From Diplonema japonicum (lineage: Eukaryota; Protista; Euglenozoa: Diplonemea), in the NCBI GenBank assembly GCA_964019335.1, contig OZ025686.1, forward strand, positions 186,001 to 250,000: a DNA stretch of 64,000 nucleotides, read 5' to 3'. The notes under the pieces were generated by a model that saw nothing but the letters and a program-made list of their open reading frames with translations, ran no database searches and had not been told where the DNA came from. A program made the position numbers and the translations under genes. Shown in pieces: positions 9,764 to 59,779 of this stretch. Position 1 is the stretch's first letter; each line of letters opens with the position of its first letter.

Positions 9764-10480
9764 CTACAGCTGACGAAAGACGCCTTCCTCGAGTAAGTCG
9801 TGGATGTAGCTCCTGCGGATGTCCCAGGCACGTCGTGGGATGGAGGTGTTGGTGCGGTTGCGGATGTTGACGTAGATAGTGGTGGGGCGGGGGCCCCAAC
9901 GCTCATTCTCGCAATAGAGGTCTAGCTGAGTGGCGGCTTCTGGTTTGTACTTCAGTTGGGAAGTAATGTTGAGCTCGGTTCGGATCTGTCTCGCGACCCT
10001 CTTCACGTCCCACGTCCGCGTGAAGTCCAAAGAGTAGATAGCGATCACATGGACATCTGATTCCGGGGTGGCCGGCGACACCTTCGCCACACCGCACCCA
10101 AGCCCTGTGGTGTACAATGCCACGCACACCCGCTCCCATAGATCGTCTACTTCATCTCGTTCCGCCATCAGAATCCATTTCCCCAGCGTGTAGTTGTGTT
10201 TCGTGAACAATGGCGTGATGGCCGCCATGTCCACTTGGTGGACCTCCCTTGCTGCGTCCCGTTGCAACAGCTCCACTGGTACCTTTTTGTTAAACTCTTG
10301 TTCCAGCTTTGGGTGCACCGGAGGTGGTTCCCACATCTCATGCTGGTAATGTGCGCAGATCCACGGTGTGACTGTGTTCGACGTCCTGCTGGGCGGCAGC
10401 CGTGTCACAAACTCCAGCACGCTCTCCCCGCTTTTCTTGTAAGCCCACGTACCTACTTTCGGCACTAGCTCGCGCATCAT
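9764..10480 (-). CDS. DUF1917 / BLES03 (C11orf68)-like protein, eIF4E-like fold
   Basis: Family motifs GKWIL, AKVSP, HVIAIY..DF...DVKRV, LKYKPEAATQLDLY. Confidence 0.8.
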   Translation of the reverse strand: MMRELVPKVGTWAYKKSGESVLEFVTRLPPSRTSNTVTPWICAHYQHEMWEPPPVHPKLEQEFNKKVPVELLQRDAAREVHQVDMAAITPLFTKHNYTLGKWILMAERDEVDDLWERVCVALYTTGLGCGVAKVSPATPESDVHVIAIYSLDFTRTWDVKRVARQIRTELNITSQLKYKPEAATQLDLYCENERWGPRPTTIYVNIRNRTNTSIPRRAWDIRRSYIHDLLEEGVFRQL

Positions 10481-41335: not shown

Positions 41336-41501
41336 TTGTTTCTCTTCCTTCGTGGAAGAAAGGCCCGCCCCCCCCCCCCCCCCCCCCTCTGCTGGGGTTT
41401 TTTTTTTAAATGTAAAGTGTCGAATGAAGAAAAAAAAAAAAAGAAGAATGACTTTGGTTGCTTATAAACCGCCTGGCGCACAAGCAACTGCAGGCACAGT
41501 C

Positions 41502-41761
41502 TACTTGATTACAGGGGGTGCTCCTCGGCCGAGCAGTAGCTTCTTCTGCGTTCCGCGCTGTGTCCTTAATGCGTGCGGTGTGCTCAACCCTAGCCGGGGC
41601 GCCCCGGGTAACCAAGATTCTGCGCTCGTGCAGTTTGCTGCCTGTTCGTCACCCTGAGCATCTGCAATCACTCGGGCGCTACCGGTGATGACCGACGAGG
41701 AGGTCAACAGCGAACAATACATCTGATGTACTTCTTATATTTCCATGTTATCCCCACCACC
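41502..41761 (-). mobile_element. Ribozyme-headed short interspersed element, copy 1
   Basis: Highly similar to 49151-49417 and 59351-59619; begins GGTGGTGGGGATAAC and ends CCCTGTAATCAAGTA. Confidence 0.8.
41637..41761 (-). ncRNA. HDV-like self-cleaving ribozyme, copy 1
   Basis: P1 GGUGGUG/CAUCACC, P2 GCUGUUG/CAGGCAGC, P3 ACC/GGU, L3 UCCUCGUC, P1.1 CC/GG, P4 CGCCC/GGGUG, J4/2 CGAA (catalytic C at 41648). Confidence 0.85.
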
Positions 41762-48531: not shown

Positions 48532-49150
48532 GTTGGAGGAAACCTGCAGTGAAAAGAAAAAAAGAAAGAAAAAAGAATTTCCGAGGAATTCTTTTTCTCG
48601 TGCGCAATGGTTTTTTTCTTTTTTTTTTTTGTGTTCCTTTTTTTTTTTTCTTTTGATAATAATTACAAGTGTTTTCCCCATTTAAAAACACATTTTTTTT
48701 TTTCTCGTTTTGGTTCGTAGAAAATCCCACCAGTGTGGTGGGAGGGGGAGAAAGAAGTGTTAGAAAAAAAAAAAAAAAAAAAAAAAACGACCCACCCTGG
48801 CGTCTTCCTCTTCTCTTGTTTTTCAAAAAAAAAAAAAAAAAAACATAACAACTCCGAAGACTGGAGTATACCCGGGGTCGTTTGGATCGAGACAGAAAAT
48901 GAAAAAAAAATAGGAGGCGAGGGGGAAGGGGGGAGAAGACCCACCCTTACTTTCTTTTTTTTTTTCTTTTTTTTTTTTGTATCTAAGAAACAAAGAAGTG
49001 AATTGGACGACTGGGTGGGGTGATTGCGGGGAGAGAGAAAATGAACGGTGCAAGGGAGAGGTAAGGTTGCCTCCCACTTTGCTGGGAATAAAAAAAAAAA
49101 ACTCGATGATTTAAAGGAAGCCGGTGGGGGCACCCTGCACAAGCACCATT

Positions 49151-49417
49151 TACTTGATTACAGAGGGCGCACCTCGGCCTAGCTGTAGCTTCTTCTGCGT
49201 TCCGCGTTGTGTCCTTAATGCGTGCGGTGTGCAGCTCAACCCCAGCCGGGGCGCCCCGGGTAACCAAGATTCTGAGCCCGTGTAGTTTGCTGCCTGTTCG
49301 CCACCCAGAGCATCTGCTTCTTCCACTTGGGCGCTACCGGTGATGACCGACGAGGAGGTCAACAGCGAACAACACATCTGATGTACTTCTTTATATTTCC
49401 ATGTTATCCCCACCACC
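49151..49417 (-). mobile_element. Ribozyme-headed short interspersed element, copy 2
   Basis: Homologous to 41502-41761 and 59351-59619. Confidence 0.8.
49289..49417 (-). ncRNA. HDV-like self-cleaving ribozyme, copy 2
   Basis: Same core as copy 1; J4/2 reads GGCGAA as in genomic HDV (catalytic C at 49300). Confidence 0.85.
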
Positions 49418-58459: not shown

Positions 58460-59350
58460 ACGAACCCATACAAGGAGAGAAGTAAGTGAAAAAAAATAAA
58501 ATAAAATAGAAACTTCAGGATAGGTATTTACCCCCCCCCCCCCCACACTGCGAACAGTAGTAAAAAAAGGAGACTTGACTGAAACCGAGGATATACTTCG
58601 CCCGACTGGTACCTGCAGCTGATACTTACTTTCTTGCCTGTTGGATTACAGCAAAATATGGAAATCCTAATTTTTTTTTTTTTTTTGAGTTTGCAATTTT
58701 TTCAGGTAACGGGTCTTACAGAGGTTACATTTGCTGGACAAAATAAAAAAAGGTTGGAGGGAGAAAAAAAAAAAAAAAAAAGAGTGAGATCGAGGTGTCG
58801 TGTTGTACAAGTCAAACCACTTTTATTTTTCTGTTCTCAGTTTCTCCCCCCCCCCCCCCCCCCGGAAAAAACTGAATTCAAAGTATTTCTTTTGTTACAC
58901 GGGTTAGGTGAAAACCCGCACATTTTCTTCTTTTTTTTTGTTCTTTTTTAGAATAAAATAGACGGCACGATGGAAAGTGATGGGAGAAAGAAAAGGAGAA
59001 AGAGAATAAGAAAGAAAAGGGGAAGAAGAAAAAAAAAAAAAAAAAAGGGTAAAAAAAACCCCCCCTATTTCACCCATGTTCGTACAGAGAAGGGGGGAGA
59101 AATGAAAAAAAAGAAATACCAGTTGTCTAGCAGTTTTTTTTTTTCCTGGTCCCTTCTCTTTTTTTTTTTCCTCTCTCTTTTCTTCGGTTGCCGCGCTCTT
59201 AATTTCCTAGAAAATAGTGATGAGTGCGTACAATAAAACTCAGCGTTAGGCTTAGTTTTTTTTTTTTTTTTTTTTTTTTTTTCTTTTTTTTCCACTCACA
59301 TTTCTCTGTCACGATTCACCACCACTTTTTTTTATTTTCTTTTTTTTAAG

Positions 59351-59484
59351 GGTGGTGGGGATAACATGAAAATATAAGAAGTACATCAGATGTGTTGTTC
59401 GCTGTTGACCTCCTCGTCGGTCATCACCGGTAGCGCCCGAGTGGAAGAACGTAACGCAGATGCTCAGGGTGACGAACAGGCAGC
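59351..59484 (+). ncRNA. HDV-like self-cleaving ribozyme, copy 3
   Basis: GGTGGTG-(J1/2)-GCTGTTG-ACC-TCCTCGTC-GGT-CATCACC-GG-TAG-CGCCC...GGGTG-A-CGAA-CAGGCAGC; catalytic C at 59473. Confidence 0.85.
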
Positions 59485-59619
59485 AAACTGCACGAGCGCA
59501 GAATCTTGGTTACCCGGGACGCACCGGCTAGGGTTGAGCACACCGCACGCATTAAGGACACGACGCGGAACGCAGAAGAAGCTACTGCTCGGCCGAGGAG
59601 CGCCCCCTGTAATCAAGTA
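59351..59619 (+). mobile_element. Ribozyme-headed short interspersed element, copy 3 (opposite orientation)
   Basis: Reverse-complement homolog of copies 1 and 2. Confidence 0.8.
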
Positions 59620-59779
59620 GGTAGTTCGTGCTTCATTGCACGCTTAACGCCACCTAGTGTTGCAATCAAAGCCCCATTTTTTTTCTTTCATTTTCAAGAA
59701 GGAACAAGAGGAGGGAATAAAAAACCTTTAGTGTAAAAAATTAAAGAGAGAAAAATGCTTCACAACACCAAATGTGTCG

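Follow-up and report, generated by a model that had tools for sequence, protein, structure and literature searches.

The 64,000-nucleotide (nt) window analysed here (the whole stretch at positions 186,001 to 250,000 of the forward strand of contig OZ025686.1, Diplonema japonicum assembly GCA_964019335.1) carries three copies of a short interspersed element (SINE). The family is probably a recently active, SINE-like retroposon of the non-LTR type (lacking long terminal repeats), the first 125-134 nt of which would form a self-cleaving ribozyme like that of hepatitis delta virus (HDV). The main reason to think the ribozyme real is that three families of long interspersed elements (LINEs) in the same genome, LINE-G, LINE-H and LINE-F, each have an HDV-like fold that starts exactly at their own first nucleotide. 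What is inferred is catalysis, the manner of priming at the 3' end and the identity of the LINE that mobilises the major SINE subfamily.

The SINE family

An earlier note on this DNA had placed three copies with a sharp GGTGGTG start at 59351-59619, 41502-41761 and 49151-49417, and all three were found as placed, the first on the + strand and the other two on the - strand. Its length of about 260 nt and its end at 59619 had to be revised: the element runs on for ~55 nt, to 59676 in the first copy, to near 41446 in the second and to 49102 in the third. The homology had appeared to stop near 59619 because the last ~55 nt differ between SINE subfamilies. The element is 316-326 nt long and the three copies align at about 90-95% identity. 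Two of them (41k and 49k) are sense to the surrounding minus-strand open reading frames (ORFs) and one (59k) is antisense. The copies and the features flanking the 59k copy are listed below, with G1 denoting the first nucleotide of the element.

59351-59676, + strand: full SINE copy (326 nt) belonging to the major subfamily, made up of the ribozyme head, a GC-rich body and a 3' hairpin tail ending ...CAAAGCCCCA
41446-41761, - strand: SINE copy of the second subfamily; G1 at 41761, ribozyme at 41637-41761, 3' end approximate (41446-41450)
49102-49417, - strand: SINE copy of the third subfamily; G1 at 49417, ribozyme at 49289-49417
59635-59666, + strand: 3' tail hairpin; AUUGCA (59635-59640) pairs with UGCAAU (59661-59666)
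59340-59347, + strand: upstream target-site duplication TTTTTTTT, then extra AAG (59348-59350) before G1
59677-59684, + strand: downstream target-site duplication TTTTTTTT, matching the upstream copy

The tail hairpin of the 59k copy has a predicted energy of -11.8 kcal/mol (RNAfold), weakly better than shuffled sequences. The 41k copy has a tail hairpin of its own (GUUGCUU/AAGCAAC), and the tail of the 49k copy ends CTTCCTTTAAATCATCGAG, which is similar to the 3' end of LINE-G/H (CTTCCTTTAACTCATATA).

Family-wide figures are counts of sequence patterns in the 62.5-Mb assembly, together with sampled loci. Counting put the genome-wide copy number, which the earlier note had proposed to establish, at no fewer than 829 heads (829 matches to an 18-mer of the SINE head with at most one mismatch, against 1 for a control). 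A 20-mer from the end of the major tail gave 407 matches against 0 for its control. One head is therefore common to several tail subfamilies. A genome search with the SINE returned 1412 first-look candidates, of which the best 40 were scored and were all 99-100% identical. Positions 1-269 of the 59k copy are 100% identical to five more loci and 99% identical to another 34. The family is young and recently active.

Some loci depart from this simple layout. One SINE copy occurs twice with identical flanks, 44 kb apart on one contig (L003 and L004, G000:C69:95644-98912 and C69:51490-54758), and this pair is a segmental duplication rather than two insertions. Two longer variants retain positions 1-280 and a normal 45-nt tail, separated by an insert of ~1 kb with a tRNA-like stretch (L056, G000:C12:383500-384940) or of 118 nt (L054, C7:526830-527630). 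A neighbouring DUF4200 protein is 84% identical to its counterpart in Diplonema papillatum and 99% identical to one in a EukProt transcriptome. The host is a diplonemid, a member of the sister group of the kinetoplastids, and not a trypanosomatid.

A predicted HDV-like ribozyme at the SINE head

The fold predicted for the head of the 59k copy is given below in terms of its paired (P), joining (J) and loop (L) elements; all lie on the + strand.

59351-59484: predicted HDV-like ribozyme, 134 nt, as judged by the pair table, P4 folds, strict descriptor and invariant core
59350/59351: predicted cleavage site
59351-59357 with 59422-59428: P1, GGUGGUG/CAUCACC, 7 base pairs (bp), one of them G-U
59358-59400: J1/2, 43 nt
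59401-59407 with 59477-59484: P2, GCUGUUG/CAGGCAGC, 7 bp with a bulged G
59408-59410 with 59419-59421: P3, ACC/GGU
59411-59418: L3, UCCUCGUC
C59412-C59413 with G59429-G59430: P1.1, formed with the GG following P1
59431-59472: P4 hairpin, -10 to -11 kcal/mol
59473-59476: J4/2, CGAA, with the putative catalytic C59473

Every helix named in the earlier note is present in the pair table, as are L3, P1.1 and the CGAA junction with C59473. That note had also described an invariant core with changes in J1/2 and P4, and the comparison agrees. The ribozyme measures 125-134 nt among the three window copies, and their differences within it are confined to J1/2 and P4 (the P4 loop of the 41k copy is 9 nt shorter). 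None of the 49 core columns varies, whereas 16 columns do so in the 135 positions of the body (13 by substitution, the others through a 3-nt insertion; P about 0.003).

SINE subfamilies that are expanding by retroposition keep the catalytic C. An old SINE copy within a larger subtelomeric repeat has lost it (CGAA to TGAA); given its conserved flanks, this copy has apparently been multiplied at the DNA level. In this composite repeat (L090-L101; for example C2:58740-59130, C35:9370-9750 and C57:10260-10640) the old SINE has conserved flanks on both sides, and one flank type is similar to the LINE-H tail (TTTAACTCATATATATAT). Several copies of the repeat lie about 10-35 kb or less from contig ends. 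The old SINE carries several CpG-to-TpG changes, including that at the catalytic C, which hint at decay through CpG methylation.

LINE families that begin with the same fold

The genome carries many intact LINEs. LINE-G has a single 2034-residue ORF with an APE endonuclease and a reverse transcriptase (RT), and six copies start exactly at GGGGCUGG with unrelated flanks upstream. The fold predicted from this first base has P1 GGGGCU/GGCCCU, P2 CUGGGGA/UCCCCAG, P3 ACC/GGU, L3 UCCACGU, the GG, a 9-bp P4 and J4/2 CAAAC. Four copies of LINE-H begin exactly at the same kind of start, again behind unrelated flanks. The LINE-H protein is ~82% identical to that of LINE-G and its head has the same fold, with L3 UCCAAGU, J4/2 CAAAAA and a compensatory change from C-G to U-A in P4 relative to LINE-G. 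For LINE-F the core lies near the start of the ORF (GCC-UCCACGA-GGC-CCCCACU-GG, with J4/2 CGAA), and the 5' strand of P1 was predicted from CCCCACU to be (G/A)GUGGGG before the upstream sequence was read. The start is GGUGGGG in two copies with differing upstream sequence, one of which is a fusion to the spliced leader. The weakest helix of LINE-F is P2, with 6 bp and a bulge.

In the SINE, LINE-G, LINE-H and LINE-F, P1 begins at a first nucleotide that was defined independently of the fold. If each position pairs with a probability of 6/16, we calculate that complementarity between the 6-7 nt at the terminus and the 6-7 nt that follow the P3-L3-P3' core would arise by chance with a probability of about 0.001-0.003 in each independent family. 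P3, an L3 of the form UCCNNG, the GG of P1.1 and a C-purine-AA junction are common to the four heads, and L3 position 6 is G in every one (UCCUCGUC, UCCACGU, UCCAAGU and UCCACGA). P1, P2 and P4 are wholly different in sequence between the SINE, LINE-G/H and LINE-F while their pairing is kept; the helices covary between these heads. A G1-U wobble closes P1 in all three LINEs. Across the heads, the ribozymes are 110-135 nt long with a J1/2 of 40-64 nt. The start codon of the LINEs is located within J1/2, and their N-terminus is encoded by the fold itself.

The LINE-G protein is matched at 100% identity in a transcriptome assembly. The distances of the LINE RT to L1 ORF2p and to R2 in the PDB are about the same. 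The LINE-G/H tail forms a stable hairpin (z about -3).

Descriptor searches

A strict descriptor of the fold matches exactly the three SINE heads in the window, with 0 matches in 200 block-shuffled windows and 0 in the reversed window. It also matches the heads of LINE-G and LINE-H, at the 5' end of each. Across the genome the core pattern was counted 130 times, compared with 7 in the control, and nearly all matches are of the SINE or LINE-G/H type. MAFFT put the core of the six ribozymes out of register, and the pair table was made by script.

A loose descriptor matched one further place in the window (10212-10462, + strand; L3 UCCCAC and a 107-nt J1/2). This match is unrepeated, was not matched by the strict descriptor and was set aside as chance. 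The same was done with eight matches to the SINE core pattern in a metagenome scan, which by eye look like GC-rich bacterial coding sequence. The N-termini of diplonemid LINE proteins from D. papillatum and others carry no clear sign of a ribozyme.

Retroposition and target sites

At the 30 loci sampled, the SINE flanks are unrelated up to G1 and diverge again only past CCCCA, which marks the 3' limit of the major subfamily. On the sense strand the insertions sit in T runs. The copies are bracketed by direct repeats that are T-rich and 7-18 nt long, and clear duplications that are not homopolymers were found by script (TATCTTTT) and by eye (ATTTCTTTTTTT). Between 1 and 11 extra nucleotides, mostly A, precede G1. 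The mean length of the T runs is 8.5 upstream and 10 downstream, and because these are similar no poly(T) tail is claimed.

Eleven head-less tails were examined. Five are diverged full copies, one is truncated at position 149 and four consist of 42-45 nt only, starting at the base of the 3' hairpin (L046, L047, L048 and L051, which begin at about position 284). The last has an internal insertion separating body from tail, as does a twelfth locus, selected for the 1.3 kb between its head and tail. The SINE has no ORF. Its target-site duplications, extra 5' nucleotides, truncated and tail-only copies and abundance bear out the proposal of the earlier note that this is a non-autonomous retroposon. 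Scans of the SINE for tRNAs and for bacterial-type promoters and terminators found nothing. As regards a classical SINE promoter for RNA polymerase III (tRNA, 7SL or 5S), the element contains no tRNA and no Rfam family, and is therefore described as SINE-like in the manner of NARTc or RIME.

At several loci there is a spliced leader ending ...CAGTTTCTGTACTTTATTG, which we take from published sequences to be of the diplonemid type. It is joined to the SINE head in eight copies, five as ...ATTG/GTGGTG and three as ...ATTG/GGTGGTG (the slash marks the junction), and both junction types are those expected from AG acceptors (an extra A plus G1, or AAG). The window copy has such an acceptor context directly before G1, with a polypyrimidine tract and AG at 59340-59350 (T8-AAG), and its AAG/G agrees with the three fusions joined exactly at G1. 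The fusions and the 5'-side truncations together establish that the strand read in the earlier note is the RNA strand. Assembled contigs from sequencing runs not recorded as RNA and labelled as three other organisms contain the element without its flanks at 90-99% identity, and in one assembled contig GGTGG is joined to the spliced leader.

In the genome as a whole, the spliced leader's 3' half was counted 217 times, dispersed and often near contig ends. It is joined to the first bases of LINE-G, LINE-H and LINE-F copies (for example L068, C3:787700-788900; C27:396671-396689). In one case a LINE-H start follows it after 86 nt (L064, C2:150100-151100), as expected of a retroposed read-through transcript. 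In another the junction is two G short of the normal LINE-G start (L062, C30:603940-604440), which a simple AG acceptor does not explain.

Proposed mechanism and its weak points

The SINE, having no recognised promoter, would be transcribed within a longer read-through or polycistronic RNA. The nested double pseudoknot would fold, and the C of J4/2 (C59473) would cleave immediately 5' of G1 to leave a product RNA starting exactly at GGUGGUG. The endonuclease and RT of a LINE would then nick an A run, which corresponds to a T run on the sense strand of the element, and the RT would copy the RNA from its 3' end, consisting of the small hairpin, ...CCCCA and probably a few U. The expected outcome would be target-site duplications rich in T, a small number of extra nucleotides, mostly A, in front of G1, and 5' truncations in many copies.

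Several observations weigh against this account. Assembled contigs cannot show where RNAs start, and the cleavage is predicted from sequence. P2 is bulged in the SINE and in LINE-F, J4/2 is 5-7 nt long in the LINEs and J1/2 reaches 40-64 nt. The strict descriptor was tuned on these same sequences. The loose descriptor found 5 matches in 475 kb of reversed control, or about 1 per 95 kb, and fold matching alone was therefore dropped as evidence. The HDV-type families of Rfam gave no match, at the gathering threshold or up to E = 10, on either the SINE or the LINE heads. Little weight is given to this failure, as the Rfam models lack pseudoknots and the long J1/2 insertions probably break the alignment; known HDV-like ribozymes have mostly been found by structure descriptors.

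The leader fusions, and the leader with 86 nt before LINE-H, represent uncleaved RNAs that were occasionally copied too, so that cleavage is incomplete or in principle dispensable. The partner LINE is a further point of difficulty. As to the autonomous, RT-encoding partner that the earlier note had proposed to look for, the 49k-type tail CTTCCTTTAAATCAT is similar to the LINE-G/H tail CTTCCTTTAACTCATATA. No LINE with the major SINE tail was found among the 11 head-less tails, which were SINE copies, and the 3' ends of three further LINE families gave no match to it. The 3' end of LINE-F is not delimited, because its two copies stay identical for >460 nt downstream.

Alternative explanations

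A promoter could also give an exact 5' end. In L1Tc the same 77 nt act as promoter and ribozyme (PMC3383444), and an exact 5' end alone cannot discriminate between the two. The diplonemid head might accordingly be mainly an internal promoter, with G1 as the transcription start as in Pr77 of L1Tc and the fold a relic or a coincidence. The lack of Rfam support and the fact that cleavage is a prediction leave room for this reading, which we nevertheless regard as improbable. Four unrelated heads keep the fold with differing helices and the same core, whereas a promoter would conserve sequence and not pairing, and the leader-fused and read-through copies show that transcription can begin upstream. 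The roles of promoter and ribozyme are, moreover, not mutually exclusive.

The leader fusions raise the further idea that trans-splicing at the junction AG produces the 5' end, the leader being lost afterwards through stalling of the RT or truncation. The leader does lie at or one base from G1 in eight SINE copies and in copies of LINE-G, LINE-H and LINE-F. It is present, however, on only eight of at least 829 heads; truncation would leave ragged ends, whereas those observed are exact to the nucleotide, and an AG immediately preceding G1 is missing from most of the 30 copies sampled. We consider this explanation very unlikely. Less credible still is that the family consists of retro-pseudogenes of a cellular small RNA, or is an opposite-strand element with poly(A) at its end. 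This was suggested by the A runs that adjoin CCACCACC in each of the three window copies when the opposite strand is read, and by C- and D-box-like motifs that can be made out there by eye; against it, the subfamilies carry exchangeable 3' tails, and neither strand contains an Rfam family or a tRNA. The reading as CCACCACC followed by poly(A) was rejected, as the runs are duplications present on both sides and the leader fusions and truncations fix the strand. A retroposon headed by a predicted self-cleaving ribozyme is preferred to all of these.

Other retroelements in the genome

A further LINE family, with a 1437-residue ORF (L104, G000:C17:194600-195600), terminates in ...CCCCCTTTAAACTTTTAAA and then T38, so that its 3' context is a T run, as in LINE-G. 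A family with a 1445-residue ORF (L102) ends in A35, and one with a 1461-residue ORF has a 3' untranslated region in common with LINE-F. Peptides resembling the 2A 'ribosome-skipping' sequence (...GDIEANPGP, ...GDVEQNPGP and ...VETNPGP) lie just upstream of the endonuclease domain in other LINE families (L072, G000:C36:428200-429000; L073, C51:87300-88200; L074, C17:190200-191000), and the motif recurs at or near the N-termini of the relatives P0050, P0054, P0055, P0069 and P0070. A similar 2A sequence is present in L1Tc.

A poly(A)-tailed LINE (L043, G000:C52:154200-164190) encodes an endonuclease-RT-RNase H protein of 1382 residues and an ORF1 of 1026 residues with no Pfam match; it forms head-to-tail units of about 7.65 kb in RT-dense clusters on C51, C52 and C61. 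The OTU domain (PF02338) was matched 112 times. Many of these matches lie a few kb or less from a contig end, inside open frames of up to about 3000 residues (for example L084, C18:1933-5190, and L085, C31:609851-613108). These OTU-bearing elements look like telomere-associated retrotransposons, and no ribozyme was found in the six loci examined.

Implications

The literature search returned no report linking diplonemids with HDV-like or self-cleaving RNAs, in agreement with the view of the earlier note that the elements are undescribed in this lineage. The D. papillatum genome paper lists LINE-like ORFs under automatic names only and defers the curation of elements (PMC10161547). If the predicted cleavage is true, the genome contributes four HDV-like ribozymes of natural origin and new sequence, a SINE head with at least 800 copies and three LINE heads, and the strategy of ribozyme-terminated retrotransposons extends from the trypanosomatids to their sister lineage. 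It would also offer a natural system for studying the translation of uncapped, leader-less LINE RNAs in an organism that trans-splices. The number of SINE heads and their preference for T runs matter for the annotation of intergenic regions and trans-splice acceptors in diplonemid genomes.

A more speculative proposal, which we put forward tentatively and with the odds against it, is that the diplonemid retroelements form an undescribed combined system of ribozyme, leader removal, A-run priming and self-made trans-splice acceptors. From general euglenozoan biology, the host mRNAs are assumed to be trans-spliced. In such a system the ribozyme may remove the upstream RNA, including the spliced-leader cap. 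The LINE RNA, with its start codon in J1/2, may then be uncapped, implying cap- and leader-independent translation. The U-rich 3' ends may prime integration at A-run nicks, and each insertion may duplicate the polypyrimidine tract and so create a trans-splice acceptor at its own 5' junction. The presence of ribozyme-headed LINEs in diplonemids as well as kinetoplastids would then hint that the association goes back to their common ancestor.

Comparison with known systems

In function and layout the diplonemid SINE matches a known class, the ribozyme-terminated non-LTR retroposons. The genomic HDV, CPEB3 and drz ribozymes have a nested double pseudoknot core, and L3 of the HDV ribozyme is UCCUCGCU. 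The predicted SINE head resembles the HDV ribozyme in this architecture, in its L3 (UCCUCGUC compared with UCCUCGCU), in the GG after P1 and in the J4/2 sequence CGAA. Unlike the HDV, CPEB3 and drz ribozymes, the diplonemid heads have a long J1/2 and match no Rfam model, and in the LINEs J1/2 contains the start codon.

Other classes of ribozyme also process retroelements, including twister variants in Schistosoma (PMC8501958) and the hammerheads of retrozymes (PMC4918200). As in these elements, a self-cleaving RNA is predicted here to define the ends of a retroelement transcript. The ribozyme class differs, and retrozymes cycle through circular RNA. The animal R2 ribozyme and the R2-derived SIDE elements (PMC3774820; PMC3414825) are closer. 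In these animal elements a 5' HDV-like ribozyme frees the element RNA from a co-transcript, extra nucleotides can occur at the 5' junctions, and short non-autonomous derivatives with internal deletions retain the ribozyme together with the 3' end; the diplonemid SINE would be comparable in the first two respects. R2 is specific for 28S rDNA and uses a restriction-like endonuclease, whereas the diplonemid LINEs have an APE-type endonuclease and are dispersed in T runs.

The L1Tc/NARTc, ingi/RIME and SIDER elements of trypanosomatids carry the Pr77 or L1TcRz HDV-like ribozyme (PMC3185411; PMC4035085; PMC3383444). Pr77 is 77 nt long, whereas the predicted diplonemid ribozymes, in a diplonemid host, occupy 110-135 nt with a J1/2 of 40-64 nt. 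Unlike Pr77, which is one shared hallmark, the SINE and LINE heads of the diplonemid are dissimilar; the comparison with Pr77 is by description rather than by sequence. The diplonemid insertions also differ from the L1Tc group in lying in T runs with no demonstrable poly(A) tail. As in L1Tc and ingi, cleavage is expected 5' of position +1, the copies are intergenic and the elements live in a euglenozoan, which trans-splices its RNA and transcribes it in polycistronic units. As in L1Tc and NARTc, a predicted HDV-like ribozyme makes up the first nucleotides both of autonomous LINEs and of short non-autonomous elements.
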